NCBI GenBank assembly: GCA_002269645.1
Contig: NIVC01004384.1
Span: 1 to 47,885, forward strand
Reading direction: 5' to 3'
Source: Macrostomum lignano
Taxonomy: Eukaryota
Length of the DNA stretch: 47,885 nucleotides
Under the pieces are notes generated by a model. That model saw only the letters and a list, made by a program, of their open reading frames with translations. It was not told the DNA's origin and made no database searches. Position numbers and translations under genes: made by a program. Of this stretch, positions 2,031 through 33,777 are shown in pieces (the stretch's first letter is position 1; each line of letters starts with the position of its first letter).

Positions 2031-5000
2031 ATGAGCAGCAACGAAAAACTCCCCCAATCGCGGGGGAGAAACGATCTAATGGAAAGCATGATGTGAAAAG
2101 CAAATCCGGAGTTGAAGAGGGTGAATTCGCCGCTCTTAATTTGCATAACTACCGCCTGGCCGACAAGAAAAGAGATCAGTTGCAACAGTTCTTGTAAGTG
2201 ACATTATTTGGTGGTTAAAGCTTGACTTTTGCTGCCCCAGTTGATAAATTTTAGTGTTTAATCGATACTTTGATCCTTTTCTGTTTAGATCGTTGATCTG
2301 CATTTCAATTTTGCACTATTTATCTAACTATCAAATTTACATATATGTATTTAGAAACTTAGACATCTATATATATGCTTAATTGGTTATAAGTTGTATT
2401 TTACTTGCAACCTAAAACATTGGATGTGGCCTTAATAATGGTACGTTGGATTTCACCAAAAATATTAGATTCTAAAACTGTGAATTTACTCTATATTAAC
2501 AGGGTATATTTTGTACATACTGCAACATTCTTTCTCTGAACGCAATTTGCAGTAATTTATTGTTAAGTATCAAAAATTTATACTCAAACATTTTGGGGTA
2601 TCTAAATTTCATATCTGAAAAATTATATTTTAACTCTAATCTCATTTTTAATTAGAATCGAGAGGGCGCTGAAAACACAGCACGAAATGAAGTATGACAA
2701 CAAAGATCTGTCGAAACCAACTCCGCCGGAGTATCCACAGGAGGTGCGCCTTTCCACTGTGTTTTATTTTGGCTTGAGATGATTTTCAATCTCTGCAAAT
2801 ACTTGTCTTGCTTATAGAACTTTAGCTAGGCAAAAAACTACTTTTCAGATGATGAGCGATGACAGAAAAGTGCGATTAAACTACGAATTCCTACGAAAGT
2901 GCGTTGAAAGCAGCCCGATTCCGCCCATGTCGCCGGAATGGCTGGTCAACATAAAGCACAAGATTGCCGAACATCTTCGCGAAGGCAAGGACGATTTTCT
3001 GAACGAAGTGCTGGCTGAAGTAAATCAGAACTTTGACACAAGCATGAAGAAATCTCTTGGTGAGTAATTCAAAATTTTTAAACTAAAACCCGCTTGAAAG
3101 GGGTTGCTTTCAATGCAGATTATCTAATTTTACGAGCTGAAACATCGATTTTAGTTCAACTGTCTCTGAAGAAGCCTGATGTCCCTGGCCTGGAGGACGA
3201 TGATCTAGTGGAACCGTCAGAGGAACCAGTGTAGGTCATCAACTTTAATTTAACTGATCACTGAGAGAATTTAAGTAAGCCTAGCCTAGAAGCCTAAAAT
3301 TTAAGTAAGCGATTTCGAACTCAATAAAATTTTCAGAGGACTCGATTTCTCAAAGGAGTGGCACGAGAGTTTCGTAGCGAATAAGCGAGAAATTTCTTAC
3401 CGGCTGATGATTCTGTATCCACAAATGCCAAAGCTGCTGGAGCTGTGCCAGCGTGAGCTCGGCCAGCAGATAATTCTGGACTTGGCTGAGTACAAGGCCG
3501 AAAGCCCCATGGAGTTTGAGACATTGCGCACAAATGTTACCTACGAATGCGAAAAGATGGAAGAGCGATTACTCGGCCACTGGTACCGGGAGGTGATGAA
3601 GATCTTCTCTGAACGCACAACTTCAGTGCTTCGTGTGGACCTTCAGGAGCCGTTCTACAGCTGCGTAACCACTCTCATGTCAAACCAGCTCAAGCTGCTC
3701 AAAGAGGAAACCGTCAATGCGTGGGTTCTCCTCTTTGATGAGGAGCAGCGCTTCAGGCTGCCGCAGCTCAACATGTTCCTGTCCTTCCAAGATCGCCAAA
3801 TGAGCGTCGATCCAGAGTACGCGGTGTACGAGGACCTCCTACTCTCGGTTGTAGATGAGGTGAACAAGAGCCTAAGCTCGATTCCCACAGTGAGCTCGCA
3901 GCTGTCAGCCACGCCGAATGTGAACGTCCCGACGGAGCTGGCGGAGCACATCGTGCAGTTGGCCAAAGCCAAACTAAAATCCGCTGCTGCGCGCTACTTT
4001 GAAAGCGTAGAGAACAGCCTCAGGTCGTACCACGAGCGGTACGATTACCTGGTCGACGGTACGGCCAACTCTCGAGTAGAGAAGTTCCTAACCGAGGAAC
4101 ACACGTTCGCCGAGTACTGCGAGCTGATCGAAGAGTATCGCGCCATCTCGTACGCCATTCGGCGTAATCCAACCATAGAGTTCTACGATCTCATCCGGCT
4201 GAACGTCGAGGAGCTGAAGAACGGCCTCGCCGAAGTGGCTCAGGGCTACGCCGACCGCCTGCTGGAGCGGGTGGTGCGTGACCACCGTGCTGAGAACACA
4301 AAAATCTGCCAGCAGTTCGACTACGTCAAGGCCAGAGCTCAGAAGAAACCGGAGACCAGCGAGGAGCTCATGGAGATGATTAAATTTATGGAGCAAGCTC
4401 GTAGCACTGGCATGGTGACGCTGAATGAGAAGATCAAGGAATCACAAAACCGCCTGCAGTACTTGCTGGACGTCTGGATCTTCAACGACGACGATCTCCA
4501 GCTGAACAGTGAAGTCCTGACTTGGCCGAAGAGGATCTCGCCAATCTTCGATGAAAACGAGACGGTAAGTAGCTGCTGAATATGATAAATTAAAGTACGC
4601 ATTGAGTTACTTTGCTTCAATCAAATAACTCTTCCAGCTGCAAGAGGAGTCCAAGACTCAAGGTGAGAAGCTTCTGATTGAGCGCAAGGAGAAGCTAATT
4701 GCCGAGTTGCAGCGCATCCGCAACCGAGTGGATGAATTCAACGACTACGGCGAGATGGATCTCGAGATCATGAGCCAGTACGTGCAGGACGTCAACAAAG
4801 TTCAGCAGCGCCTGGACACCGCTCGGGCCGACTCCGAGTGGATCAACAAGGAGGAGCAGCTGTACAAGTACCCGTGACGCCATTCCCAGATATCGACGAC
4901 TTGACTAACCTGATGCAGCCGTTCCTTAGCATCTTTAAGAACACATTCCGATACTTGAATAAGGAGAACCAGTAAGTGCATGAAATAGTGTTTATCGAAC

Positions 5001-8000
5001 CATGGAAATACTTTAGCGTAATGTTTTATCTCTCTCTTCAGGTGGCTGAAAGGTGAATTCCTCGCCCTGGATGCCGAGCGCATTGCCGAAGAGGTGGATG
5101 AAATTAGCCGCGAAATTTTCCGCGTCTCCAAGGTGTTCAACAACCGGCTGAAGAAGATGCAGGCCGAAAAGGAAGAGCGGGAGCGCGAGAAGAAGAAGAG
5201 AAAGAAGCTGGAGGAAGACACTCAAGGTGAGGGTGGCGAGGAGGAAAAAGATGATGAAGAGGAAGTTAAGCCGCCCGCTGCACTGGACATTTGCAACACT
5301 CTAACGGAGAAGATCCGCGAGTTCAAGGAGAAGATCAACGTCATCGAAATTCTGTGCAACCCGGGCATCCGGCAGCGTCACTGGGAAAAAATGTCCAGCA
5401 TCTGCGGATTCGACATCACCCCGGATTCTGGAACAACTTTAATCAAGGTGCTCGGGCTCAAGCTGGACGCCTTCATGGAGGAGTTCGGCCAGATATCCGC
5501 TGCCGCTACAAAGAGCACAGCCTTGAGAAGGGTGAGTTCAGATTTGGCTTCTATCAAATTTCTAGTTCGTGGTTATTACACGCATTCCACATACCGGCAT
5601 TTCAGGCATGAAGAAGATGATCGAAGACTGGGAGCCAATCAGCTTCTCCCTGATCCCCTACCGCGAGACCGGCATCAACATTCTGTCCAGTGTTGACGAT
5701 ATTCAAACCCAGCTCGACGACCAGATCATGCGCACGCAGACGATGCGTGGCTCGCCGTTCATCCGGCCATTTGAAAAGGAAATCCGAGAGTGGGAAGAGC
5801 GCCTGCTGCGCATTCAGGAGACCATCGACGAGTGGCTGAAGGTGCAGGCGAACTGGCTGTACCTAGAGCCGATCTTCAGCTCTGAGGACATCATGCAGCA
5901 GATGCCGGAACAGGGCCGCCTGTTCCAAACTGTGGATCGCAACTGGCGCGACATCATGAAGAACACTGCCAAGGACCCCAAGCTGCTGAAGGCCACCGAC
6001 ATGCCCGGCCTCCTGGAGAAACTGAAAGACTCCAACGATCTGCTGGACAAGATCCAGAAGGGTCTGAACTCCTACCTGGAAAAGAAGCGTCTTTTCTTCC
6101 CTCGATTTTTCTTCCTGTCGAACGATGAGATGCTGGAGATTCTGTCCGAGACAAAGGACCCGCTGCGCGTCCAGCCGCATCTTAAGAAGTGCTTTGAGGG
6201 CATCGCGAAGTTGGAGTTCGATAGTGCGCTGGACATTCACGGGATGTATTCGAGCGAAGGAGAGAAGATCAAGTTTAGCCAGACCATCAGCACGTCTGAG
6301 GCGCGAGGAGCGGTTGAAAAGTGGCTCCTTCAGGTGCAGGACGTCATGTTGATGTCCATGCGCGATGTTATCGCTGCGTCCTACGACGTAAGTCCTGTTT
6401 CTCTCTCCCTCAGCTAATCCATTTTTAGAGTTTATTTAAACAAAAAATTGAGCAAATCTCCGTTCCATTCGTAGCGTTTGATCATTCTCGTATAATAGAT
6501 TCCGTCAGAGCGGCAACAACTCAACCATCGTAAAATCGTTTTTTAGGACTTGTGTGACAAACGAATCAACAACATCATGTTTGCGTCTAGTCCCGCCGAT
6601 GAGCTGATACGTTTTAAGCTTTAAAATTGTTTATTTAATTTTATTGGGCACACAATAGCATCAATAGCTTAAGCATTTTCTCTGGTCATATTTGCTAGTA
6701 CGAGTAAATTTAATTCGTTGCGTCCGATATATGTCACTAAGCATGGTAAACTATTAGGCTGTCACGATGTACAGTTCGATCGGTACTTTTTATACAATAC
6801 GATGAGATGCAGTTATTGTCGCACTGAATGCCAACGTTTCAGAAATATCCGTCGCTCTTGTCAGCGGACACGACGCATGTAATTTCTCAATTTGTCGTGC
6901 TTGTTTTTGTTCAGTTGTTGGTGAACTGAAGTTTGAAATTGAATGTTTGACCAGTGCCATCCCGAGACGCCAAAATCAATCCTTGCTGTTTCAGTGTATC
7001 AATTGTCAAGTCACTGTCTATTTTTGTTTTTAATCACGAAATTCTACTCGTACTAATAATTTTGTCGGTTAAATGACTCAATCAATAACAGTATTGAAAA
7101 TCACATATTTCCTTCCCTTCGCATGCAAACCATAAAATGTTTTTGTGTGCGCTGATTAATCAATCTTCATTAACTGCAAGGTCACCTCAACCGTTTTCTC
7201 TTTATAGGCCTATGCTATTGAGGCCCGAAAGAAGTGGGTCTGTGACTGGCCTGGACAGGTAGTCCTGTGTGTCTCCCAGATCTACTGGACAGCCGAGGTG
7301 CACGACTCGCTAAGCGCCGGTGTCCAGGGTCTTAAGGACTACTACAAGAAGCTGTCCGACCAGCTATCTGACATCGTTGTGCTGGTTCGTGGCAAGCTGA
7401 ACGCGCAGCAGCGCATCACTCTGGGTGCGCTGGTCGTTATCGATGTGCACTCCCGGGACGTGGTGGAAGACATGGTGAAGAAGGGCGTGTCCGATGAAAA
7501 CGACTTCAATTGGCTGGCGCAGATGCGCTACTACTGGGAGGACGAGAACGTGTTCATCCGCCTGACCAACGCCAAAGTTCGGTACGCCTACGAGTACCTG
7601 GGCAACTCGCCGCGTCTTGTCATCACGCCGCTTACGACAGGTGCTATCGCACTCTGATCGGCGCGTACCACCTCAATTTGAATGGCGCTCCCGAGGGTCC
7701 AGCCGGTACGGGCAAGACGGAAACAACAAAGGATTTGGCGAAGGCTCTGGCTGTACAGTGTGTTGTTTTTAACTGCTCGGACGGCCTGGACTACATTGCC
7801 ATGGGGAAGTTCTTCAAGGGCCTGGCATCCAGCGGCGCCTGGGCCTGCTTCGACGAGTTCAATCGAATCGAGCTCGAAGTATTGTCTGTGGTGGCGCAGC
7901 AGATTCTCAGCATCATCATCGCCGTGCGAAGCAAAGCCTCTGAGTTCGACTTCGAGGGACCCTGCTCAAGCTCAACCCCAACTGCTACGTGTGCATCACC

Positions 8001-11000
8001 ATGAACCCCGGATATGCCGGCCGCTCCGAGCTGCCCGACAACCTGAAGGTGCTGTTCCGGCCGGTGGCTATGATGGTGCCAGACTATGCCATGATCGGAG
8101 AGATCTCTCTTTACTCGTTCGGCTTCATGGACGCTCGAAACCTGGCCGTGAAGATTGTTACCACTTACCGACTGAGCTCCGAGCTGCTCAGTTCGCAGAG
8201 CCACTACGACTACGGAATGCGTGCCGTCAAGGCTGTGCTCTCAGCTGCCGGAAATCTCAAGCTGAAGTTTCCAGATGACGATGAGAACATCCTGCTGCTA
8301 CGCTCCATCCTGGATGTGAACTTGCCAAAATTCTTGTCGCACGATATTCCACTGTTTGAGGGCATCATCAGCGACTTGTTTCCGGGAGTTAAGAGGCCCG
8401 AAGCGGACTACAGGATCTTCCTCGACGAAATTCGTCGCGTATGCGAGGCTCACAAACTGCAGAGTGTTGACTTCTTTACCGAGAAAATCATCCAGACCTA
8501 CGAAATGATGATCGTACGTCACGGGTGAGTTGCCGAGTGAATGCTTTTGCTGATTGTTTATCGTATGAGCAAACAGTACACAATAAATGCTTTCCTATTT
8601 TAGCTTCATGCTGGTGGGCGAACCGTTCGGTGGAAAGACGAGTGTGCTTCATGTTCTGGCCGAGACGATGACCAATTTGAACGAGGCCGGCTACTCGGAA
8701 GACTACGAGAAGGTCATGTACCGGACCATCAATCCCAAAGCCATCACAATGGGCCAGCTTTTGGCCAGTTCGACCCGGTGTCGCACGAGTGGACCGACGG
8801 TATCACAGCCAACACGTTCCGAGAATTCGCTTCTAACGACACACCCGACCGGAAGTGGGTCATTTTCGATGGGCCCATCGATACGCTGTGGATTGAGTCC
8901 ATGAACACTGTTCTGGGTGAGCTTGGATTAAATAGATAGCACAATTTATCAATAAAATGTGAAATATTCAACGGCACTGTCAATATTTTTGTTTAATTGC
9001 AGACGACAACAAGAAGCTGTGTCTGATGTCTGGAGAAATCATCCAGATGAGCAAGGTCATGAGTCTCATCTTCGAGACCATGGACCTGTCGCAGGCGTCC
9101 CCGGCCACTGTCAGCCGGTGTGGCATGATTTACCTCGAGCCCAGCACTCTGGGCTGGCGCCCGTTGGTCAAGTCCTGGATCGAAAGCTTCCCCGAGGTGC
9201 TGATCAAGGACGGCAGCCAAGAAGTGATGTCGCACCTCATGGAGTGGGCCATTGATCCTTGCCTGGACTTTGTGCGCAAGAGCTGCCGAGAGTACATCAA
9301 CAGCAGCCAGACTAATCTGGTGCGGTCATGCATGTTCTTCATCGACATGCTCATGGACGAGCACGTCAACGCCGAGAACGCCAAGGACAACAAGCACCTG
9401 AAGACGTGGATTGTAGCTGCCTGGCTCTTTGCCATCCCGTGGTCCATCGGCGGCATTCTGGACGTCGACAGTCGAGAAAAATTCGACAAGTTCTTCCGCG
9501 AACTCATCAGTGGTCGCAATGAGGCTAACCCGATACCAAAGGAGATAGGCAAGATTGAGACCGTGTTCCCAGAAAATGGAATGGTCTATGACTACATGTA
9601 CGAGGTATGCACTTGCTACAACTAAGCTTCAATTCTGCCAGTCTGTCTAACAAAGCATAACGCAAGCTAACAAACAATTTCTTCTATCATGTGCAAACTT
9701 CCAGTTTAATAGGCTCAACCTTGTTGTAAGTTAATTGTCATGACCAAAGTGGCACAGTCACAGTGGCTAGAATCACGATTTTATTTGTGTCAAATTTCGT
9801 ATAAATGTGTTTTTTCAGCCAGTACAAAGAGGAAAGATTTTTTTATCTTTTTTATGAAAATGCTTTATTTCAAGAATTCACACGCATTTTCATAGGGTCA
9901 GCAGCAGAAATCTGACTTAGTCGGAAGTAGAGCAAGCACTGCCTTTGTTGCCATTGCAGACCAAGGCCAGAGGCCAGTGGCGCCACTGGAACGATCTGAT
10001 TCGCGGCTCGGATCTGTTTGCCGGCAAGAAGATCCGCGAGATCCTGGTGCCCACCATGGACACCGCACGCTACAAGTTCATCATGGATCTCTGCATTGAG
10101 AAATCACGGCCGCTCATGTTTGTCGGCCCTACCGGCACGGGAAAATCCGTCTACGTCCAGGACAAGATGATGAACGAGCTGTCAAAGGACAAATTTGTGC
10201 CTCATTTCGTGAATTTCAGTGCTCAGACAAGCGCCAATCAGACGCAGACCGTCATCATGTCAAAGCTGGACAGGCGCCGCAAGGGAATCTTCGGACCGCC
10301 GATCAACAAGCAGGCTGTCATTTTCATTGACGACATCAATATGCCGCAGAAGGAGGTGTATGGAGCCCAGCCGCCCATTGAGCTGCTTCGCCAGTACTTT
10401 GACCACGGCAACTGGTACGACTTGAAGGACACTTCCAAGATCATCCTTCAGGATGTTTACTTCATCGCCGCCATGGGACCACCGGGTGGCGGCCGCAACG
10501 ACATCACGCCGCGCTTCATGCGACACTTCAACATCGTCTCAATGACGCCATTTAACGATGACACAATGATTCGCATTTTCACAGCTCTGATGAATACGTA
10601 CATGAAGACGCAAGGCTTCACATCGGACTTCCTCGCCATCGGCAGTACCATCGTGCACTCGACCATGGAGGTCTACAAGGCAGCTATCAAGAATCTCCTG
10701 CCAACGCCGGCTAAGAGTCACTACGTGTTCAACCTGCGCGACTTCAGCCGAATCATCCTGGGTGTCTGTCTGATTAAGCGCGAGCAGGTGACAGAGAAAC
10801 GCGTCTTCACTCGCCTGTGGTGCCACGAGGTGATGCGCGTCTTTTACGATCGTCTAACAGACGACACGGACAGGAAATGGCTATTCAAGCTGCTGCAGGA
10901 CTCAGTAAAGAACCACTTCAAGGACAGCTTCGAGTCCGTGTTTGAGCATCTGGCCGGTGGCGGTACTGGGCAGGGGTCAGTCAGCGAGGAAGACGTCAGA

Positions 11001-14000
11001 TCGTTGATCTTTGGCGACTTCATGAACCCGGATCTTGAGCCTGATGAGCGGGTGTACGAAGAAGCAAAGAGCATTGACGATTTGTACCCGATTGTCGAGC
11101 AGGCTCTGGACGAGTACAACAACATTCAAAAGAACAAGATGCACCTGGTCATCTTCCGCTACGTACTAGAGCATCTATCAAGAATCTGCCGCATCCTCAG
11201 GACGCCAGGAGGTCACGCCCTTCTTGTCGGCGTCGGCGGCTCTGGTAGACAGTCGCTAACGCGGCTGGCCACCTCAATGGCTGGCTACATCATCTGCCAG
11301 CCGGAAATCTCAAAGAATTACGGCATGACCGAGTGGCGCGAGGACGTCAAGAAGATGATGAAGAAAGCCGGTGCTGAAGGAAAGAAAACCGTCTTCCTGA
11401 TGGCCGACACGCAGATCAAAGAGGAAACCTTCCTGGAGGACATTGACAATCTGCTAAACACGGGAGAAATTCCCAACCTTTTCCCCAACGACGAGAAGGT
11501 TGAGATCATGGAGACCGTGCGGCCATTTGCCCAAGCTGGCGACAAGAACGCCGACTTCTCTCCAATCGCCCTGTACGCATTCTTCGTGAATCGGGTGCGA
11601 GAGAACCTGCACATTGTGATCGCCTTCTCGCCTATTGGCGACGCATTCAGGAATCGGCTACGGAAGTTTCCCAGCCTGATCAACTGCTGCACAATTGACT
11701 GGTTCCAGCCCTGGCCACCAGATGCTCTGGAACGCGTGGCCATGAAGTCCTTCGAGTCAGTCGATATGGAGGATGACCACAGGACCGACGTGGTGAAGAT
11801 TGTGCAGAATTTCCACACCAGCATTCGACTGCTGTCAGAAAAGTTTTTGACGGAGATGGGACGTAAGACATACGTGACGCCCACCTCCTATTTAGAGCTT
11901 ATCCTCAGCTTCCGAGGCCTCATCAATGCCAAACAGGAGGAAACGATGCGCCAAAAGCGGCGCTACGTCAATGGTCTGGACAAGCTGGCCTTCGCTGGTG
12001 AGCAAGTGAAGGACATGCAGGAGAAGCTGGAGGCTCTGCAGCCGCAGCTGGTGCAGGCCAGCGCTGAGAACATTGAGCTTATGAAAGTTATCGAGCACGA
12101 ATCGGTTGTAGTTGCCGAGCAGGAGGACAAGGTGACCAAGGAGGAGGCGATGGTTAACGAGAAGGCGGCCTCCTCGCGTGCGTTAAAGGATGAATGCGAA
12201 GCGGACCTGGCTGAGGCCCTGCCAGCTCTTGAGGCCGCCCTGGAGGCGCTGAATACCCTGAAGCCCAGTGATATCACCATCGTGAAAACGATGCAGAATC
12301 CTCCCGAAGGCGTAAAGATCGTGATGGCCGCCGTGTGCGTAATGCGCCAGGTGCCGCCCGACAAGATTCAAGACCCGGCAGGCGGACCCAAAAAGGTGCT
12401 CGATTACTGGGGCCCGTCCAAGAAGCTGATCAACGACATGAATTTCCTGAATTATCTGAAAGAGTATGACAAAGACAACATACCCGTCGCGGTGATGACA
12501 AAGATCCGCAAGGAGTACATACCAAATCCCGAGTTCGAGCCCAGCAAGGTGTCACGTGCATCGTCCGCAGCTGAAGGTCTGTGCAAGTGGATCCTCGCCA
12601 TGGAGGTCTACGATCGCGTCGCCAAGGTGGTGGCCCCGAAGAAGGCCAAGCTGGCCGAGGCCGAGTCCGAGCTGAAGAGCAACATGGAGATTCTGGCGCA
12701 GAAGCAGGGCGAGTTGCGCGCCGTGCAGGACAAGCTGGCCCAGCTGAAGCAGCGGCTGGAGGACGCGCAGAATGAGAAGGCGCGCCTAGAGACGGAGGTC
12801 GATCTCTGCGCCAAGAAGCTGGACAGAGCCAAGAAGCTTATCGGCGGCCTTGGAGGGGAGAAGGACCGCTGGGATCAGGCGGCCAAGAACCTGCAGAGCA
12901 TCTACGACAACCTGCTTGGCGATGTGCTCATATCCGCAGGTGTTATTGCCTACCTGGGCCCATTCACCATGATCTACCGGTCCCAGACCACCAACGAGTG
13001 GGTGAAGCTGTGCAAAGAAAAGAATATTCCCTGTTCGGATAATTTCTCCCTGACCGTCTGTCTGGGCGATCCCGTGCAGATCCAGGCCTGGAACATTGCC
13101 GGCCTGCCGAGAGACGCGTTCTCCATTGACAATTCGGTCATTGTGTCCAACTCCAGGCGCTGGTGAGTGCTAAGCAATCGATTGTAATATACCATTTTGA
13201 GTCTCGACAGTGCAAAGACGCACAAATTCGTTGGTTTTTGCGTAAAAGCGTTGCTTCGATGGGATGCCGCAACTCCCCCAGTCCATCCGCATGGGATTCC
13301 GCAACTCCCCCAGTCCATCGATAGGATTCCGCAACTCCCCCAGTCCATCGATAGGATTCCGCAACTCCCCCAGTCCATCGATAGGATTCCGCAACTCCCC
13401 CAGTCCATCGATGGGATTCCGCAACTCCCCCAGTCCATCGATGGGATTCCGCAACTCCCCCAGTCCATCGATGGGATGCCGCAACTCCCCCAGTCCATTG
13501 ATGGGATTCCGCAACTCCCCCAGTCCATCGATAGGATTCCGCAACTCCCCCAGTCCATCGATGGGATTCCGCAACTCCCCCAGTCCATCGATGGGATGCC
13601 GCAACTCCCCGGTCCATCGATGGGATGCCGCTACTCCCTGGTCTTCACCAAAGGAACTCAATTGATTCTGCTGTCACGTGATTTAACATAAGCTTTCTAT
13701 CGACACGTTTAGGCCGCTCATGATCGATCCGCAAGGCCAGGCCAACAAGTGGATCAAGAACACATACAAGTCGACGCCAGGCTTCGCCGTGATCAAACTG
13801 AGCGACTCGAACTACATGCGCCAGATGGAGATGGCCATCAGCTACGGCAACCCGCTGCTACTAGAGAATGTCGGAGAGGAGCTGGACCCCAGCCTGGAAC
13901 CGGTGCTGCTCAAGCAGACTTTCAAGCAGAGTGAGTTTAGACAAAATTTCAGTAGGTTTTCTGCACTGCCTCGCGACAGTCCAAAGAACCGGCTTTTGTT

Positions 14001-17000
14001 TATTGAAGCTACAGGCACGATAGCTGAGATAAACCACCATTGTCTTTGATAATATAGTAATATATAATTTTTGCTAATTAAAAACAAAACAGTAGCAAAC
14101 CATATAATGCATGACAATATATGTATTGGTAATGTCAGGTATGCATGTCTCTCATACTCATAACAGCATTACTAATCATTGAAAATAACAAACTTATCGA
14201 ATATTTCAGCTAGAGGACAGAGTAAGACGATCATTTTTCCAGTTATAACAACAGATAGAACTATATTTGGTTACCATGGGAACAAAACCGTGTCACCTTA
14301 GTTTTGTTTTGTTCAATTTTTTCGAGTCGGCAATTCACAAACAGTTTGTGTGTGACTAGAGTTATGTATGTACGAGCATACACTGCATATATTGATTGAA
14401 TATCCCCAGCGGGCCACTCTATAAGAAAAACTGGTCCCACAATAAAACTGAGCCAATTACGGAGCGAATTATTTGTAGAATACCAAAGCTAATTTAATAT
14501 CGGCAAAAAATATTAGACGAATCTCGAGCCAGCAGCGGCAGCCGGTACGACATCTCAGCGTCAGCCTCCAGCCTGACTCGCGGCCTCGGTGAGCTCGCAT
14601 GTCGGCTCTACAAAAAGTACATAATAACCAGCTTGGTCAGTTGCCAGGCTGCACGATGAGGCCGTCTGTCTGTGCATCCGGTGCATGAGCGGTGCATGAG
14701 CAGCTTCTTTGGTCCGCATGTGTTCGGTCTTGCATCTGCATGATTCCACTGGCGGCAGATGATAGAAACTACTAAATAAACTATCTTAATGTATAATGCA
14801 TGGAGTCAGGATAGAGGGCTGTGTCACTGAGCCGAAGGATCGGGATAGAGGGCTGTGTCACTGAGCCGAAGGATCGGGATAGAGGGCTGTGTCACCGAGC
14901 TGAGGGATCGGGATAGAGGGCTGTGTCACCGAGCTGAGTGATCGGGATAGAGGGCTTTGAGAATTCCACCAAGGCACGATTCCTTAAGTTGGGCATGTGA
15001 AGACTATTGGAGATGGAGTGTAAAAGTTTTGTGCACTCGTTCGTCCCTTGAAATTCCATTTTCACAGAAGTCACTCACCTTTAATATTGAATTATTTCTT
15101 TTAGAGCAAAATATATTTTTTCATCGTTAATTTCATAGCTTTGCTTTGGAACGCACAGGAATGAGGAACATTTATTGCAGTTAGTTATACTCTAAAAATG
15201 ATCGAATCCCTCCAGGTGGAGTCGACATGATCCGTCTGGGCGAAACCACCATCGAATACTCGAAAGATTTCAAGTTCTTCATCACCACAAAGCTGAGGAA
15301 CCCGCACTACCTACCGGAGATCGCCGTGAAGGTGTCCCTTCTGAACTTCATGATCACGCCGGAGGGTCTGGAGGACCAGCTGCTTGGCATCGTGGTTGCT
15401 AAGGAGAAGTGAGTGGTGGTTTAGACACACCTGTTTTAGCTAGCTATGGCTGATTACTGTGAATTCTACTATCAGTAGGCTCAAACGCATTTTCCAATTC
15501 AAATCAATCCCACTAGGCCGGACCTGGAGGAGGAGCGGCAGTCGCTGATTAAGATGACCGCGCAGAACCGGCGCCAGCTGAAAGAGATCGAGGACAAGAT
15601 TCTGGCCACTCTGGCCGAGGCCGAAGGCAACATCCTGGAGAACGAGAGCGCCATCCAGATTCTCGACTCGTCCAAGATCTTGTCCGACGACATTCAGAAG
15701 AAGCAGAAGGTGAGGCGGTGCTTTCAAGCATGTACACTTATACTATGTCGCTAGCCTAGTGGCCTAGCGCATTCGCCACCATCACTACTGCAAAGGTTAA
15801 ACAGAGTTGGTTACGGTTAGCATGCAGCTGAATGGCACGTTTAAGATGGCCCTAAATATTAAACTTATCTGCGGAAGTCTAGAAGTTAAGAAATTGCTCA
15901 TCAATACATTATATTAGTGATAAAATCAGCACAAGTCCTATGTCGCCAGTGAATTTTTATACTAACTGCACATTTGATATTTAATTTAGGTGGCAGAGAA
16001 AACTCAAGAGAAAATTGATGCGGCCCGCATGGACTACGCGCCAATTGCGAACCACTCATCGATACTGTTCTTCTCGATCACGGATCTGCCTAACATTGAT
16101 CCGATGTACCAGTACTCGCTGACCTGGTTTGTCAACCTTTACATCAGCTCCATCAATGAAAGGTGAGAATATTGGTGATTTTATTGCCTCCTTTGAAGCT
16201 CCTCCTTTCCTCACACAATATTGGCTAGAGAGTTCTAGTCTACAAACGTGATGCTGATTGGCTGGAAAAATGATGCCTAGTCGTTTTCTACCTCTCATGG
16301 GCACCCACCTCACTCCACTCAAGCTGATTGGCTGTCAGATCAGTCAACTTCTCTCACGCGATGCCTATCATGTATTTCAGTGCTTTAGTATTACTATCAT
16401 ACATCATGCATAACTTATATTTAATTTTATCGTTTGCATCACTTTTGCCCAAATGTACGCGTCACTGAAAGATGCATAAATTTAACTCACAATATGTAAT
16501 AAAGTCGTGCATTCAATCCATCACCAAGTTAAAACAGTTAGTTAAAATAATTTTCAGCAACAAGTCAAAGATTCTGGAGCGCCGCATTCGCTACCTGAAG
16601 GACCATTTTCAGTACAATCTGTACGAGAATGTGTGCCGCTCCCTGTTCGCCAAGGACAAGCTGCTTTTCTCATTAAAGCTCTGCACCAATTTAGTGATGT
16701 GAGATCGAGTTCATAATCCCAGCTCGTAGATATGGATTATGATGACGAAAGCTCTGAGGCCGAATCGATTTCGGCAATATGATTGCGGTCCCGCTAATCT
16801 AGCATTGATTGATTTTATTATTATTAATAACAATTAACCACGGCTATTAATCAATAATTATGTATATAATATACGCTTACTAACAGTGATTAATTTGCTA
16901 TTTAACTAACTATTAGTAGCTTAGTAGCGCCAGCCCGCCTGGCCAACGCTTTCCACCGTCATTTCAGTAATAAGAGCCGCATTCTGGAGAAGCGAATCCG

Positions 17001-20000
17001 CTATCTGATTGAGCACTTCACCATATCGCTCTATACTAATGTCTGTCGGTCGCTATTTGCCACCGATAAGCTGCTATTCTCATTTCTAATGACCACCCAG
17101 CTCATGTCGTAAGTTAAACCCCAACCCCCGGTCTAATGAAGCTTGGCAAGCTAATTTAGACGATTTTGAAATACTTCTTCTTCTTCCGAGTTAAAATAGT
17201 TCTGTCTCTTCGCTGCTCCAGCCACTGTCCATGCTATACTTATCCAACCTGCCACTATAACACTGCGCTGTGAGGACTAATCTGAGCTTTTGTTGCTCTT
17301 TTTTATTATTTTTAATTGGATCTTTTGTTAAGCACATTACCGATTGCAGTGCTTCATGTCACCTACCGGTACAGTTGTTTTGCAATCAAATTTATCGGCT
17401 AGTTTGTATAAAACACTTTATATCACAATTGCCTCAAGTTTTGCAAACAGAAAATATTCACAGTCTATTTAATGCTCTATTGTAAGTAGTATACTTCAAG
17501 CACTTTGGTAGAGAGATTGAAAAAGCAAGAAAATCAGAGCTTGATTCACACAATCAATATAGTTGATTCACTAGTACCAGAACATTTGGAACTGCTCTAG
17601 TCATCGCCATTGCTCAAAACCCATATTGCAGTGCTCGAGGCGAACTTGACGAGAAGGAGCTGCTGTTCCTTCTCACTGGCGGAGTCGGACTGGAGAACAA
17701 GCTGCCCAATCCGGACCCGTCCTGGCTGTCCGAAAAGAGCTGGGACGAAATCTGCCGCATGTCTGACCTGCCTGCGTTCAAGGGATTCAGGTGAGAACGG
17801 GTGAACCCAGGTAACTGGAACAGGTGTGTGCTGATCACTCAGGTATAGCTGGGAGCAGGTGTTCCTGGAGCGTATCTCCAGGTTATCCAACGACGATCTT
17901 ACCTATGGACTCGGGGCAGCTGGTCAAAAAAACGGCAGGCAAGGTCCGGAGAGCACTCAGCTATTTAATGACGCACTTCTGTTAATTTTCCAGGCAACAC
18001 TTCTGCGACCACATCTCCGAATGGAAGCAGTTCTACGAGAGCAAAGATCCGCACGAGGCGACCCTGCCCGACCCGTGGCACACCAAGCTGGACGAGTTCA
18101 AGCGCATCATCGTGGTCCGCTGCATCCGGCCAGACAAGATCATCCCAATGGTGACGCAGTACGTCAGAGAGAAGCTCGGCCCAAAATTCGTGGAGCCGCC
18201 GCCGTTCGATCTGAGCCGCTCCTATCAGGACTCGCGCCGCGATGTGCCGATGATTTTTGTGCTGTCGCCGGGCGCGGATCCCACCATGGCGCTGCTGAAA
18301 TTCGTGGACGACATGGGCTTCAGCGGGAACAAGTTCGATTCGATCTCGCTCGGCCAGGGCCAGGGACCCATCGCGGCCAGGAAGATTGAGAAGGCCATGG
18401 AGGATGGCAGCTGGATCATGCTGCAGAACTGTCACCTGGCCGTCAGCTGGATGGGCGAGCTGGAAAAGATCTGCGAGGAGTGGCTGGCCAGGGAGAACAC
18501 GCATCAGGACTTCCGCCTGTGGCTCACCAGCTACCCGAGTCCGAAGTTCCCCGTCACGGTGCTGCAGAACGGCGTCAAGATGACCAACGAGCCGCCGACC
18601 GGCCTGCGGCAGAACCTGCTGCAGTCGTACCTCAACGATCCCATCTCTGACCCATCATTCTTCAACGGCTGCCCCGGCAAAGAGGCCACGTTCGAGAAGC
18701 TGCTGTACAGCCTCTGCTTCTTCCACGCGCTGGTGCAGGAGCGCCGGAAGTTCGGCCCGATGGGCTGGAATATCCCCTACGGCTTCAACGACTCTGACTT
18801 GAGCATCTCCGTGCGCCAACTGCGCATGTTCGTCAACGAGTACGAGCAGGTGCCCTACGACGCCATCACCTACCTGACTGGCGAGTGCAACTATGGCGGC
18901 CGCGTCACCGACGACCGCGACAGGCGCTGCCTCATGACGATCCTGGCCGACTTCTACAACCCCGGCGTGGTCACCGAGCAGAAGTACAAGCTGAGCCCAT
19001 CCGGCAACTACTACATCCCCAACAAGATGGACTACGCCGACTACCTGGAGTTCATCAAGAAGCTGCCGGCCTACCAGCACCCGGAGGTGTTCGGTATGCA
19101 CGAGAATGTTGACATCAGCCGGGAGCTGCAGGAGACGCGCGGCCTGTTCGACTCGGTGCTGCTCACCCTCGGTCAGGCGGGATCGAGCAAGGCCGGCCAG
19201 AGCGACTCCTACCTGAACGAGATCGCCACCGACATTCTGAAGAAGCTACCGCCAAACTTTGACCTCGAGGCGGCGGTTCGCAAGTTCCCGGTGGTGTACA
19301 CGGAGAGCATGAACACCGTGCTCACCCAGGAGATGGAGCGATTCAACAAGCTGGTTGGCACGGTCCGCTCCTCGCTGCAGTCCCTGGAGAAGGCCATCAA
19401 GGGTCTGGTGGTGATGAACGCCGACCTCGAGGCCCTCGGCGGCAGCCTGGCGGTGGGCAAGGTGCCGGCCCTGTGGATGCGCGCCTCCTACCCGAGCCTC
19501 AAGCCGCTGGGCAGCTACATCAACGACCTGCTGGAGCGCCTGAAGTTCCTCAAGAAGTGGTACGACGAGGACAAGCCGGCGGTGTTTTGGATCGCTGGCT
19601 TCTTCTTCACGCAGGCCTTCCTGACGGGTGTGACGCAGAACTACGCTAGGAAGTACACCATCCCCATCGACTTGCTCGGCTTCGACTTCCAGGTGCTGGC
19701 CGTGGACAGCATGTCCACCGCGCCGAAGGATGGCGCCTACGTTATTGGACTGTACCTGGACGGGGCCAGGTGGGATCGAGACAGGTGAGTCCGGGATGCT
19801 AGTAGATTTTAATGGCCATAAGAAAGAAAGTAGCTGCAGATTATAACAAAAATAAATCAAATATTTTAGTAACTGCTTCTATCACAAAATTTTAGTCTGT
19901 TGCAATAAGTAAACTCTGCAAAAAAGTTTAGGATCTTCTACAACCGGGGTCCGGGATTAGAACTCCAAACTCAAAGGCCAGGACTGCTTTTCTGAGTCTT

Positions 20001-20996
20001 TACTCTTCGTCAGCTGGTCTTCACCTATAAATACACTTGTTTGAAGTTCTGTGCGGTTGATATTTGCTCAAAATATAAAATATTGGCTTCTTTCGTACTT
20101 CGTACTTCGAGCTACTCTTTAGTAGGCGATACCTAATACAGTTCTCTAGCAGCAACCGGATTTTTGTAATTATAATCTAGGATTAAACTTCAGCTTATAC
20201 CCTTAAATAGTACTTACTAGTAGTTTAGCGATCAAGTAGACAAAAAAGTTGAGATAGAAATATATGAAGATGGCGTCAAAAAATAAGTTGCTTACAATAT
20301 ATTATAGATGGATTATATGTTACAGTACTCGTTCCCATCTCCCTCGTGTATTTTTACTGCACGGATTGTTCTCGTCCTTAAATAGTCTATGGTAAAACCC
20401 CATTAAATACTGTGCGCTTAAAAAATCTTTTCAGAGAATTTTTTAGACCAACTGTCCACACTACACTGTCTATGGTCCAAACCCCTTAGTCCAGCTTTTT
20501 ACACTGTCTATGGTTCCGACCCCTCCTCAGTCCAGCTTTTTACACTGTCTATGGTTCCGACCCCTCCTCAGTCCAGCTTTTTACACTGTCTATGGTCCCG
20601 ATCCCTCACTCTAGCTTTTTACACTATCTATGGTCCCGACCCCTTAGTCCAGCTTTTTACACTGTCTATGGTCCCGATCCCTCAGTCCAGCTTTTTACAC
20701 TGTCTATGGTTCCGACCCTTCTAATTCAATTCAGAAATTGCCTAGCCGAGCAGCTGCCAAAGATTCTGTACGATCACGTGCCAGTAATCTGGCTTCGACC
20801 GATGAAACGAGAAGAGATTGACGAGAATTCAAATCGGTACACCTGCCCGGTATACAAGACCTCCGAGAGGCGAGGCGTTCTGTCCACCACAGGTCACAGC
20901 ACCAACTTTGTGCTGCCAATCCTGCTCAACTGCACCGAGAAGCCGTCGCACTGGGTGAAGCGAGGCTGCGCTCTGCTTTGCCAGCTCGATGATTAA
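2031..20996 (+). CDS. DNAH12: Axonemal inner-arm dynein heavy chain, DNAH12-like (DNAH3/7/12 group), about 3,980 aa after correcting six -1 deletions
   Basis: Exons by GT-AG and phase: 2031-2193, 2656-2743, 2849-3059, 3155-3230, 3337-4564, 4638-4971, 5042-5531, 5606-6387, 7208-8524, 8604-8916, 9003-9604, 9960-13162, 13713-13930, 15216-15408, 15517-15709, 15990-16162, [16558-16698 or 16968-17108], 17632-17790, 17994-19784, 20735-20996. P-loops: AAA1 [11 protein letters not shown]2 [11 protein letters not shown]3 [11 protein letters not shown]4 GVGGSGRQ. Stalk and microtubule-binding domain are in exon 12; the C-terminus ends [15 protein letters not shown]. The tail ([38 protein letters not shown]) matches vertebrate DNAH12 as I recall it. 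Exon sum 11,937 + 6 nt = 11,943 = 3,981 codons. The family call is very secure; the ortholog call is less so. Confidence 0.93.
3337..4564 (+). CDS. DNAH12: Dynein exon 5 (N-terminal tail)
   Basis: TTTCAG acceptor at 3331-3336 and GTAAGT donor at 4565. Open frame [11 protein letters not shown]...PIFDENET; corresponds to ORF 3407-4579. Confidence 0.9.
5606..8524 (+). CDS. DNAH12: Dynein exons 8-9 (linker/DHC_N2 and AAA1); intron at 6388-7207
   Basis: [97 protein letters not shown]. Confidence 0.95.
9960..13162 (+). CDS. DNAH12: Dynein exon 12 (AAA3, AAA4, stalk and microtubule-binding domain, start of AAA5)
   Basis: Uninterrupted frame of about 1,070 aa: [51 protein letters not shown], coiled-coil stalk, [15 protein letters not shown]. 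Confidence 0.96.
13257..13638. repeat. 30-bp minisatellite, about 12.7 copies, in dynein intron 12
   Basis: Unit GAT(G/A)GGAT(T/G)CCGCAACTCCCCCAGTCCATC in direct tandem with no spacers. Confidence 0.95.
14270..14283. promoter_or_regulatory. Consensus-matching RFX X-box in dynein intron 13
   Basis: GTTACCATGGGAAC fits the 14-bp consensus GTHNYYATRRNAAC exactly. Similar motifs also occur inside invertebrate repeats, so function is unproven. Confidence 0.35.
14808..14956. repeat. 34-bp minisatellite, about 4.4 copies, in dynein intron 13
   Basis: Unit GGGATAGAGGGCTGTGTCAC(T/C)GAGC(C/T)GA(A/G)GGATC. Confidence 0.92.
16558..16698 (+). CDS. DNAH12: Dynein alternative exon 17a (141 nt)
   Basis: TTTTCAG acceptor, GTGAGA donor, phase 2 at both ends. 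Encodes (S)[46 protein letters not shown](I). Confidence 0.85.
16968..17108 (+). CDS. DNAH12: Dynein alternative exon 17b (141 nt)
   Basis: ATTTCAG acceptor, GTAAGT donor, phase 2 at both ends. Encodes (S)[46 protein letters not shown](S). The ORF track misses it because it is short. Confidence 0.85.
17994..19784 (+). CDS. DNAH12: Dynein exon 19 (AAA6 and C-terminal domain)
   Basis: [83 protein letters not shown]. Confidence 0.95.
20463..20720. repeat. 38-41-bp minisatellite, about 6.5 copies, ending just before the last dynein acceptor
   Basis: Unit ACACTGTCTATGGT(T/C)CCGACCCCT(CCT)CAGTCCAGCTTTTT; it ends about 14 bp upstream of exon 20. Confidence 0.92.
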
Positions 20997-21674: not shown

Positions 21675-21903
21675 CTCGACTCTTCACAAACTCGACTCTT
21701 CACAAGCTCGACTCTTCTCAAGCTCGACTCTTCACAAGCTCCAATCTTCACAAGCTCGACTCTTCTCAAGCTCGACTCTTCACAAGCTCCAATCTTCACA
21801 AGCTCGACTCTTCTCAAGCTCGACTCTTCACAAGCTCCAATCTTCACAAGCTCGACTCTTCTCAAGCTCGACTCTTCACAAACTCGACTGTTAACAAGCT
21901 CGA
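21675..21903. repeat. 16-bp monomer array organised as a 48-bp higher-order repeat
   Basis: About 14 monomers of three types (A CTCGACTCTTCACAAG, B CTCGACTCTTCTCAAG, C CTCCAATCTTCACAAG) in the order A A (B A C)x3 B A plus one degenerate monomer. Confidence 0.92.
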
Positions 21904-23419: not shown

Positions 23420-26330
23420 GTCTGCTTGCAGAAGGGGATTTCCCGTAAAGCGTGAGCGGCCGAATTTGCCACATTGTCCTGCTGGGGAACATGATCACTG
23501 CCGTCTTAGTCTCAGAGAGTTTTAGACCGCAACGATCCGCCATTGCTCAGGGGCGTAAATGAAATTCTGAAGGAAGTCCCTGAGGGTGTCAGGGGACGGA
23601 CCAGATGCCACCGCGGCGACATCGTCCGCATATCCTACTTTCAGGCCGAGTCAGGCCGAGCATCCGGAAGGAGCTCATCGATGACCATGTTCCAGAGAAC
23701 TGGAGTCAGCATCCCACCTTGCGGGCTATCTTTGCAGACGAGGACCGTCCTCTGGTAGCCCAGCAAACTGGCAGTGGCCGTGCGATGGCTGATCATGTAC
23801 ATATTCCACCTGGTGAGATGCCGAGTGCGTTTGCCTCTCACAGAGGGATCTCAGGAACGCCTCGAAGGGAACGTTATTAAAGGTGCCAATGATATCAAGG
23901 AAGATCCCCAGAGTGAAGCCGTTTCCAAGCATAGCCTTCTCTAGTTTACCGTCCAGGACGTGCAGCGCGCTTTCGGTGGAGCGACCCTCCCGAAAAGCGT
24001 GCCGGTTCTCGCTGACAGGCTTGTTCTTCAGCTCCACAGAGAGAAGGCGCCAAAGCACCAGTCTCTCCATCAGCTTGACCAGGGAGGAGGTCAGGCTGAT
24101 CGGTCTGAAGGATTTGATAGAATGGTAGTCCGGGCGGCCTGGCTTAGGGATGAAAATCACCTTTGCCACGGTCCAAGCCTGTGGGACGCATCCAAGCGTG
24201 ATGCATGCCCGTAAAAGGCTGCAAAGTTTACGCAGGAAGCCTGGGCATTTAACCGCCCCTCTTAGGAGAAGCAAGTACAATACCGTTAGGTCCTGGAGCT
24301 TTGATGGGCTTGAATGAGGTAGCTGCTTTAACGATGCGGTCCTTCATGATGATAGAGGCAGCGAGCGCGTGACCTCCCTCAGAGTGATCCGGGTGGTCGG
24401 TTAGCCGGCTCGTTAGGGAAAAACTCAGAAAGAATTATATCAAGCGTTTCCCGTGGGTTATCCGTGGACGTGCCGGCGTTCTGAGGCTTACTTTTGAGGT
24501 CCAGGGTTCCCAGACGAGGATGAGCCCCGGCATGTCGAGCTCGGCATAACGCATAATGTTGACATAGGCTATGACGTAGTGCTGCAGATTGATCTGAAAA
24601 CACCGGAGTCCCTGGCTGCTGATCATTTTCACAGTTGGGGAATCGTGGAGCAGGTCATCCTCCTTTTCAGAGCTGGTTGGCCCGCAGACCTCCATGGGGA
24701 GTTTCAGCGTCCTCGGCAGTCAGGGTGGCTGTGGAGTCCTCCGCGGGCGTGAGCGAGCCCAGCGTGGACGTAACCGTCGCCTCCCCTACGTGCTTCGGTG
24801 CCGTCACTACCCAGACCCTCTGCCTCGTTGGTCAGGTCGATGCGGGTGACGCCAGCCTTCTAGTGAGTGACAGCCTCGAACCAGTCAGTCAGCGCCTCCC
24901 CACTTTCAGCCCGGCCTTCTGGCTGTTGGGTTGGAGCGCGAGAAGTGCGGACCCGTTCAAGATGCGCCCGGAGGCTCCTGGCCTGGTCCAGCGCGCGATG
25001 AATCAGACCCGACCTTCGGGTGCTCCTGGCAGGTCTGCGGTTTCGGCTGCCGGTTTCAGCAGCGCGGACTGCCTTTCCGGGCTGGGGTCAGCCGTTTGTC
25101 TCAGCTTCTTTGTCGGAGGTGCCTGGGCCCCAGTTCCGGTTTCAGAAGCCTCAGCATGCTTCGTCAGCTTTTCGCTCCTCGCGAGTATGGTCAGCTGAAT
25201 CAGACCAATATGAATTGTGGACTTAGGCGGCAAGCGCTTAGCCCAGTCGTGAGAGAGCCCTAAGATCACAGTGGCCCCCTTCTCCTTGCCGGAAGTGGCG
25301 TGGTGTAGGAGCCCGTTGACCTCGAGGTCAGAGTGCAGCTTCAGCAGGACAATGGCACTAAATGGCACTGCCGGCCGGGATACGCGAAAGCGCTGGGTCT
25401 TTTGTCGCTCGCCCTCGCTAACGAAGACGAGTTTGCCGAGCTTCTTAGGCCAATTCTGTTTCGGCAGAAGCTCGCGTAGACTGCGGCTGCTCTCCTCCGA
25501 GTTGCAACAGATGAAGATGTAGCCGTCAGTCTTGGCTGATCTGACTACGCCCACGGAGCGGCCTGCCAGGAGCTGGTCAATAAGCGCAGCGTTGATGGTG
25601 CGCCAGGTACTGTCGAGTTGATCGGCAGTAAGGTCCTGCTCCTCCACCGGCTCCCGAAGGCCCGACTGCGCTGATGGAAGGTTTGCTGGGTGGCACACCA
25701 GCTGGGGGTGTTTCCTGGGGGGTGGGAGGCAGGGGTTGCTGTGGCTCCTTTCAGCTCAACAGCAGTAGCCTCACCCTCTGAGTTTCCCCCTCCGCAGGTG
25801 GCCAGCCCCCAGCCTCCCTGTCGTGTCGTCGTCGCCGCTCGTTGCAGCGTGAAAGCGGGAAGGAGTGAGCAAGTCACAAGGAAGAGAAGAAAGGAACAAA
25901 AAAGGAGGACCGCTAGCGACCGGTCTACTCCCGGCCTTCCAGCCCATCGGCGCGGTCAAACACCTTAGGCATTAGAGGGTACGTTAAGCAGTACCACGAC
26001 CTGCGGACTGGCGAGCCAGACCAGCAAACCCAAGTTCAGCCAACACCACTGGATGGGTAACCAGCGCCGGAGCCCAGACTGTCCAGCAGCCCTAGGGTCT
26101 CGCTTGAACACACGCGGGGACGAGTACCCTTCGGTCGACTTGCGAGACAGCGTGGGGGTCTGCGGCTGCCGGAGGCAAATAGAGGGTGCAGACCTCCCAC
26201 CAGCTTACCTGCTAAAGATAGGGGCAGGCGTGAGCATCGCAGACCTTAGTCCATAGGCCTGTCTGTCTCATACGTGTACTTTACTGGCATGCTGAATACG
26301 CCTTCACGAGCTCGGGTTTCGTCTGCCTGT
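23420..26330 (-). mobile_element. Degenerate non-LTR retrotransposon (LOA/Lian-like, I group) with ORF1, the APE N-terminus and a partial RT
   Basis: Minus-strand fragments: ORF1 (25003-25698, ILGLSHDWAKRL...HIGLIQLTI), APE start (FQINLQH...LILVWEPW), RT (KVIFIPKPGRPDY...FRPISLTS, HAFREGRSTESALH, LDIIGTF, PQGGMLTPVLWNMVIDELL). It has multiple frameshifts, lacks most of the APE, and has no RNase H or 3' end. Both boundaries are approximate. Confidence 0.88.
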
Positions 26331-32700: not shown

Positions 32701-33777
32701 GACGCTTGGCGCCATTCGTCGAGGCGAACCCGACCGCCGCCTGGGAGGACTGGGTTGGCGCCGCCTACCTGGCCGGCGTCAGCCTCTCGGCCTGCGGCTT
32801 CTGCTTCAATCCGCCCAAGGAGGACGCGGACAGGCGCAGCGGCCGGGGCGACTCTGCCCTCTACTTCACCTACGGAGCCGCCTGCTCTGAGGTGGAAATC
32901 GACGCCCTGACCGGCGATCACGTGATCCGACGCTGCGACATCGTTATGGATCTCGGCGCCAGCCTCAACCCGGCTGTCGACATCGGCCAGGTGGAAGGCG
33001 CCTTCACGCAGGGCTGCGGCTTGTACACCATCGAAGACCTTCGCTACTCGCCCGATGGCCGCCTCCTGACCCGCGGGCCCGGCGCTTACAAAATTCCTGG
33101 CTTCTCCGACATCCCGGAGAAGCTGAACATCCGCCTGCTGAGAGGCAGCCGCTGCGAGCACCCCAAAGCCGTTCACTCGTCCAAGGCGGTCGGCGAGCCG
33201 CCGCTGAACCTGGCAGCCTCGGTGCTGACGGCCATCAGGCAGGCGGTGCTGGCGGCCAGGCTGGACAGCCAGGTCGAGCTTCCGAACGGTCATCAGGGCC
33301 AGCTCAGCTTCCAGCTGGACTCGCCGGCGACCTCGGAGCGAATCCGCCTGGCCTGCGGAGGTGGGCTGGTGGCTGAGGTGAGTGCCTGGGGAAACCCGTT
33401 GAGGGCTCATTTAAACCAAAACGATTTGTCCATGGCCAAAAGACGATTTATTCAGGGTAAAGCATGGTTGGGCCGGAGCAGCCTGTCAATATTATAGATG
33501 CTAAAAAATTGTCCAGACGTCGAGTTTCAAGAGCAGTGACTTGAAGCTCGAAATTTTGTTGAAACCGATCTTTTGAAAGTAACTTTAGCGATTGTTTTTG
33601 ACAATTTGAAGTGACCCCATCCATCACAATCCTTTTTTATTCATCGTTGGCAATGTGAGAATAATAGTTTTTGCAATCCTTCGCATCATTTTTACTCATG
33701 CCTTTACCCTCATCAATTGACGCCAGGTGAGCAACACTGACGGAAGCGCCCCATGGGAGGTCCGGCCGTCCGACTGA
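26751..33777 (+). CDS. XDH: Xanthine dehydrogenase/oxidase-family molybdo-flavoenzyme, 1,345 aa, 9 exons
   Basis: Exons 26751-26795, 27485-27542, 27814-28370, 28456-28597, 28808-29070, 29395-29488, 29611-31676, 32616-33377, 33727-33777 all join in phase (4,038 nt). [2Fe-2S] motifs: [34 protein letters not shown] domain: [44 protein letters not shown]. Moco domain: [38 protein letters not shown]. Ends [15 protein letters not shown] at 33856. Confidence 0.93.
26868..27042. repeat. Degenerate ~20-bp tandem repeat in XDH intron 1
   Basis: About 8 copies around the core G(G)CGCCTAATTGA with variable flanks such as GTGTCAGG. Confidence 0.8.

Follow-up and report, generated by a model that had tools for sequence, protein, structure and literature searches.

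A tandemly duplicated, candidate mutually exclusive exon in the motor domain of a DNAH12-type axonemal dynein gene of Macrostomum lignano

Introduction

The cytoplasmic dynein heavy chain gene SmDHC1 of Schistosoma mansoni has a mutually exclusive exon (Pillmann et al. 2011, PMC3228551), and in some dynein heavy chain (DHC) genes the motor domain is alternatively spliced (Kollmar 2016, PMC5100056). For mutually exclusive exons in axonemal dynein or Dhc62B, a literature search in an incomplete library found no relevant paper. This report concerns a tandem pair of exons, 17a and 17b, in an axonemal inner-arm dynein heavy chain gene of the DNAH12 clade, located on a 47,885-nucleotide (nt) stretch of Macrostomum lignano DNA (contig NIVC01004384.1, assembly GCA_002269645.1, forward strand), which was analysed at its full length and is called the window below. 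The pair resembles that of SmDHC1: in each gene a dynein exon is tandemly duplicated, and its copies are strongly homologous, equal in length and bounded on either side by a split codon. The SmDHC1 exon was judged mutually exclusive from its single copy in alignments of other dyneins, the same argument as is used here. The present gene differs from SmDHC1 in being axonemal and of the DNAH12 clade, in belonging to another organism, and in carrying the pair at another site, the AAA5 small domain after the buttress.

In arthropod muscle Mhc, as here, one motor gene exchanges homologous exons for the same secondary-structure elements; Mhc has several clusters of as many as five variants, whose tissue specificity is documented, whereas the present gene has one cluster of two, read from the sequence. 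Dscam and 14-3-3zeta share with the present pair an exon length divisible by 3, splice-competent introns and an exclusion that would need active regulation, and they use competing docking/selector RNA structures, whereas no intron pairing above that of shuffled sequence was found here. DNAH12 is a single-headed inner-arm dynein. Mammalian DNAH12, which belongs to the orthologous clade, has one copy of exon 17 in the sequences compared and is present in both respiratory (8j07) and sperm (9fqr) axonemes. Loss of DNAH12 in mouse and human affects sperm flagella and not cilia (PMC11949491), a cell-type specificity that is not known to depend on exon 17.

Anatomy of the exon pair

Exons are numbered as in an earlier note on this DNA, made from the sequence alone, and all lie on the forward strand. 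The constitutive upstream exon 16 (15990..16162, placed from the sequence and by tblastn of the orthologues P0124, P0126, P0131 and P0136) ends in phase 2 with GAA AG at 16162, followed by a GTGAGA donor. It is separated by an intron of 395 nt with a G+C content (GC) of 0.38 (16163..16557) from exon 17a (141 nt, 16558..16698), which is followed by a GT...AG intron of 269 nt (16699..16967), exon 17b (141 nt, 16968..17108), an intron of 523 nt (17109..17631), and the constitutive downstream exon 18 (17632..17790), beginning T GCT CGA. The introns and exon 18 were delimited from the sequence, and the two copies of exon 17 from the sequence, orthologue alignment and profile score. Exon 17a has an acceptor ending ...TTTTCAG before C and a GTGAGA donor after AT, and exon 17b has the acceptor ...CATTTCAG before T and a GTAAGT donor after TC; the donor of 17b is the consensus, and its pyrimidine tract is the better of the two (0.70 vs 0.50 for 17a). 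Both copies are in phase 2 at both ends, and each links exon 16 to exon 18 in frame.

The encoded peptides are identical at 31/46 positions when complete codons are counted, and at 32/48 with the two split codons included, and the nucleotide sequences are identical at 83/141 positions (59%), with a stop codon in neither. By tblastn, one copy finds the other with E of ~3e-18 to 3e-19. The earlier note had described two 141-nt exons of phase 2/2 with AG/GT sites, 269 nt apart, either of which joins exon 16 to exon 18 in frame (GAA AG / T GCT CGA), with 31/46 peptide identity and no stop, and all of these coordinates and counts hold. Placed in tandem, 17a and 17b form an open frame (141 = 3 x 47), and the intron between them, which contains the branch-like motifs TACTAAC and CTAAC 85 nt and 59 nt before its AG, can be spliced as judged from its sequence. 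Exon 17 is the sole duplicated coding exon found in the gene, all other internal repeats being intronic minisatellites.

Sequence features of mutually exclusive exons (MXEs) were taken from WebScipio/Kassiopeia (PMC3923563; default similarity threshold of 15%). Exons 17a and 17b are adjacent and homologous, of similar length, in the same frame and phase, and have compatible splice sites, with a BLOSUM62 score of 160 between them against self-scores of 247 and 238, corresponding to a similarity of 65-67%. In D. melanogaster, 169 constitutive exons share these features, compared with 1297 annotated MXE exons (PMC3923563). The pair also encodes one structural element, which is single-copy in all relatives examined. 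Given the sequence features, the single copy in relatives and the small constitutive minority, mutually exclusive splicing is preferred and is probably the best explanation of the exon pair.

Identity and architecture of the dynein gene

The gene (2849..20996, +; identified by Pfam, PDB ranking and tree) has an approximate start codon and ends with TAA at 20994-20996. Pfam models match in the order DHC_N2, AAA_6, Dynein_AAA_lid, AAA_7, AAA_lid_1, AAA_8, MT (stalk), AAA_9, Dynein_heavy (D6), AAA_lid_11 and Dynein_C, and the gene thus encodes a complete heavy chain with linker, AAA1-AAA4, stalk, AAA5, AAA6 and C-terminal domain. Against solved structures, exons 16-18 matched human DNAH12 best (8j07_g1 residues 3121-3278, E 3e-71), followed by DNAH7 (E 7e-60) and DNAH3 (E 1e-52). 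In a neighbour-joining tree of the C-terminal 560 residues, which is distance-based and carries no support values, the gene was grouped with gastropod (Nucella), Ciona, coral and vertebrate DNAH12, apart from DNAH7- and DNAH3-like sequences. The inner-arm assignment of the earlier note was thus right, and can be given more precisely as DNAH12-type. Best identities to database sequences were 66-75% (at best 70-75% for the C-terminus), with 66-72% to pig, turtle and paddlefish DNAH12 over the C-terminal 560-600 residues; the protein is ~71-72% identical to paddlefish and snail DNAH12, about as near to these as to any other sequence. Exons of the gene are rich in GC at third codon positions (GC3, 0.66-0.90), and its introns are AT-rich (GC 0.38).

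For an animal DNAH12, the gene has unusually few introns; two of its exons run to 1081 and ~597 codons, the first of these (9921-13163) covering AAA3, AAA4 and the stalk. The MT Pfam model for the stalk and microtubule-binding region was matched nearly whole (2-336/344; open-reading-frame residues 681-1024, nt ~11961-12992, +), and human DNAH12 has been described as being without a microtubule-binding domain (PMC11949491).

Age of the copies and selection

Identity between 17a and 17b at the first, second and third codon positions was 33/46, 35/46 and 15/46. By the Nei-Gojobori method, the proportions of differing nonsynonymous and synonymous sites were pN 0.30 and pS 0.72, and the nonsynonymous to synonymous rate ratio (dN/dS), a calculation that had been proposed in the earlier note, was nominally ~0.17, a value that is indicative only, with synonymous sites essentially saturated. 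If one copy had evolved neutrally ever since the duplication, with the other under constraint, ~51% of first and second codon positions would be expected to differ; 26% were observed, so that neutrality of one copy was rejected (binomial P = 9e-7). Homologues show a conservation of 80% or more in 23 columns, of which 17a keeps 21 and 17b keeps 20, and a profile of the homologue segments gave 87.8 bits for 17a and 82.8 bits for 17b, with the homologues themselves at 74.7-102.9 bits. GC3 is 0.74 in 17a and 0.63 in 17b, against 0.66-0.90 in other exons and an intron GC of 0.38. One residue in each copy was never seen in 92 homologues (T19Q in 17a, K33T in 17b), and 17b carries L42M at a 90%-conserved column.

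The codon-position identities, the rejection of neutrality and the retained columns support the view, already put forward in the earlier note, of an old duplication with purifying selection on both copies, and the comparison indicates that both are coding exons that have been under such selection for most of their history. One copy may have gone out of use too recently for its sequence to show it, but neither copy has a lesion. Recent gene conversion was ruled out, the most similar 47-nt core agreeing at only 6/15 third positions. In local alignment, the intron flanks of the two copies had no similarity above chance (139/500 shuffles scored as high), and a direct repeat upstream of both exons (ATTTAACTCAC / ATTTAACTAAC), considered as a conserved flank, was rejected as chance at the same level (139/500 shuffles). 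That the second copy is an assembly artefact, arising from a collapsed haplotype or a mis-joined duplicate, is extremely improbable, as the copies share only 59% of their DNA, synonymous sites are saturated and the flanking introns are unrelated, whereas allelic or recent artefactual duplicates would be near-identical with their flanks included.

Single copy in relatives

When orthologous proteins were aligned to the window, the same residues aligned twice, once per copy. Residues 257-304 of P0126 matched 16556-16699 with 79% and 16960-17106 with 59% identity; the two values were 79% and 70% for P0131, and 72% and 62% for P0124. Overall, identity to orthologues was 72-79% for exon 17a and 53-70% for exon 17b. 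A tandem repeat of the exon-17 segment was found in 0/92 distinct homologue segments, and a second copy was absent at four genomic loci of relatives, consisting of three short contigs and a 77-kb spider contig in which the exon boundaries are the same as here and the exon is single. A second copy was also absent in 80 metagenome loci, most of which are intronless or transcript-like and are weak tests. Isoform pairs with identical flanks and a different middle were sought among the database matches, and none was found. The orthologue search that the earlier note had called for has thus returned single-copy relatives whose proteins align to both copies.

Both copies have Ala where ~90% or more of homologues have Glu (CRSLFEKDK), and both have Ile in K/RRIRYL, shared residues that are rare or absent among homologues. 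Since these substitutions are common to both copies, the duplication would have occurred in the organism's own lineage, after the substitutions, and the exon duplication is, on this comparison, old and lineage-specific.

The orthologue comparison bears on the view that one copy, likelier 17b, survives as a relic or a cassette that is now used hardly or not at all, leaving the gene with effectively one isoform. Exon 17b is the less similar to orthologues (53-70% vs 72-79%), has the lower GC3 (0.63 vs 0.74), and contains both K33T, never seen in the 92 homologues, and L42M at the 90%-conserved column, and recent disuse would not yet show; however, the rejected neutrality of one copy since duplication (P = 9e-7), the open frame, consensus GTAAGT donor and better pyrimidine tract of 17b, its retention of 20/23 conserved residues and its score of 82.8 bits, inside the homologue range, all argue for continued function, and 17a too has an unseen residue (T19Q), so that neither copy looks degenerate. 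A relic is accordingly rated as unlikely, though it is the strongest of the alternatives to mutually exclusive splicing. Signals as to which copy is the default are mixed, with 17a nearer to orthologues and higher in GC3, and 17b having the consensus donor and the better pyrimidine tract.

Position in the motor

Pfam AAA_9 reaches as far as the buttress hairpin, ending in its tip, and the match to Dynein_heavy (AAA6) starts in the next large exon, so that exon 17 falls between them in a stretch covered by no Pfam model. The structure was examined in an AlphaFold2 model of P0001, a 66%-identical homologue, and not of the window isoforms themselves. In this model, two long helices (residues 62-95 and 104-131) form the buttress and are followed by shorter helices, and the exon-17 equivalent consists of a loop, a 21-residue helix, an invariant RSLF turn and an 18-residue helix, with block means of the predicted local distance difference test score (pLDDT) of 87-96. 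Foldseek matched the model best to the DNAH12 chains in two axonemes, that of bovine sperm (9fqr) and the human respiratory one (8j07). According to Gleave et al. (PMC4047620), the buttress is the extended H5/H6 of the AAA5 small domain (AAA5S), and three extra helices follow H9. The placement after the AAA5 buttress and before AAA6 given in the earlier note is borne out by the Pfam borders and the P0001 model, from which exon 17 is modelled as the loop-helix-turn-helix of the AAA5 small domain directly after the buttress; judged by helix order, it is probably H9 plus the first extra helix, which extends AAA5S towards AAA6.

The 16/48 residues at which 17a and 17b differ lie mostly away from the hydrophobic stripe that is conserved in the first helix (L7, I11, L14, F18, L22); they are concentrated on the remaining faces of that helix and, in the second, in its C-terminal half (LKLCTNLVI vs FLMTTQLMS). 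This pattern also bears on the possibility that both exons are constitutively included, which would repeat 47 residues within the AAA5 small domain. Such a product would keep the frame, the intron between the copies has normal GT/AG ends and branch-like motifs, the adjacent ends of the hairpin make a tandem repeat topologically possible, and constitutive neighbouring exons with the features of MXEs exist (PMC3923563). Two copies were, however, seen in 0/92 homologue segments and in no aligned orthologue, the segment lies within a compact, highly conserved helical bundle beside the buttress (PMC4047620), and both copies have the same core hydrophobic pattern, as expected for one shared slot; double inclusion is therefore considered quite improbable.

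Means of exclusion

If the two exons are used exclusively, several simple mechanisms can be set aside. Steric hindrance of the alpha-tropomyosin type requires less than ~50 nt between the donor of one exon and the branch point of the next. This is excluded here by the 269-nt intron, in which the branch-like motifs are ~180-210 nt downstream of the 17a donor. Enforcement by frame-shift and nonsense-mediated decay (NMD) is excluded as 141 = 3 x 47 and the double-inclusion product is open, and U2/U12 incompatibility is excluded as the three donors (GTGAGA, GTGAGA and GTAAGT) are all U2-type; the U12 branch consensus TCCTTRAY was not found in the exon cluster. Because these built-in mechanisms are excluded by the sequence, exclusion would need active regulation, and the earlier note had reasoned soundly in preferring this to NMD or steric hindrance on the basis of the exon length and the 269-nt intron.

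A further suggestion of that note, competing docking/selector pairings, did not find support when the introns of this sequence were checked. The best duplexes between introns in 30-nt windows reached -20 to -22 kcal/mol, and were matched by 10-17/30 dinucleotide shuffles, and long whole-intron duplexes had z between -1.0 and +0.5 relative to dinucleotide shuffles. Two candidate elements were rejected: a 14-nt inverted repeat (16533-16546 / 16901-16914), which is at about chance level in 1.6 kb of AT-rich sequence, and a palindrome after the 17b donor (17130-17162), which is strong as a duplex and folds no better than shuffles (z = 0.12).

Separately, a 12-mer, GCTGATTGGCTG, occurs exactly at 16253-16264 and 16323-16334 in intron 16, 70 nt apart and upstream of 17a. 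It is also present at 32246-32257 (-), with one-mismatch copies at 5632, 23239 and 32275, giving 6 occurrences at no more than one mismatch in the window against 0.36 expected. The 12-mer includes the complement of a CCAAT box, with the extended form CTGATTGGYYRR, and may serve as a binding site for a transcription factor (in an internal promoter or an enhancer), act as an RNA element or belong to a small repeat.

Other features of the window

Minisatellites in which units of 16-76 nt are repeated 4-16 times are located at 13256-13638, 14809-14956, 20462-20718, 21675-21903, 26861-27040 and 44438-44985; several lie inside dynein introns, and one ends 17 nt before the last dynein exon (20735). 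Downstream of the dynein gene, a reverse-transcriptase fragment (23729-24343, -) lies between it and the next gene, which belongs to the xanthine dehydrogenase / aldehyde oxidase family (~27650-33500, +; Fer2, Fer2_2, MoCoBD_2) and has a 700-codon exon. Since this exon shares no more than 43-46% identity with its best matches, which are spread over animals as different as beetle, nematode, lobster, sea slug and fish, the gene is regarded as a divergent family member. A non-LTR (long terminal repeat) retrotransposon with endonuclease (Exo_endo_phos), reverse-transcriptase (RVT_1) and RNase H domains in three consecutive open frames (36243-40044, -) and a broken piggyBac-type transposase split over two frames (42415-43535, -; Pfam DDE_Tnp_1_7) were also found. 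A search of Rfam gave no match.

Discussion

The course of events that would account for the exon pair is as follows. An ancestral 141-nt phase-2 exon of a DNAH12-type gene would have been tandemly duplicated in this lineage, and both copies would then have been kept as functional coding exons. Each mRNA would carry either 17a or 17b, yielding two motors that are identical except at 16/48 residues of this segment, with the choice of copy made by trans-acting splicing regulators or RNA structure, and the two isoforms would differ in function or in cell type.

Several points weigh against mutually exclusive splicing. The closest matches in protein and contig collections are 66-75% identical, and exclusive use is predicted from sequence alone; with an exon length divisible by 3 and a splice-competent intron of 269 nt, neither double inclusion nor skipping is punished by a frameshift; docking/selector complementarity does not rise above that of shuffled introns; and, as the hairpin ends are adjacent, a second hairpin in tandem is topologically not impossible.

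Regulated, cell-type-specific use of the two exons, for example in sperm flagella versus somatic motile cilia, with AAA5 small domains that differ beside the buttress, is a tentative proposal that is more doubtful than exclusive splicing itself. The mammalian DNAH12 pattern makes a cell-type use of two isoforms in another animal conceivable by analogy, with no evidence for it, and a division of the isoforms between sperm and epidermal cilia is pure speculation.

Value is limited in that the event is apparently lineage-specific and its splicing is inferred. Annotation pipelines often miss one copy of such an exon pair, or join both. Axonemes vary between cell types in ways that are poorly understood, and regulated, cell-type-specific use of exons 17a and 17b, if true, would be a natural isoform swap at a poorly explored part of the dynein motor. 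It would also imply that the AAA5 small-domain surface by the buttress tunes transmission from ring to stalk or to neighbouring axonemal proteins. An exon swap of the AAA5 helix-turn-helix would mark a defined surface at which an inner-arm motor is tuned in evolution, and would provide two natural variants for motility assays or in-situ cryo-electron microscopy.

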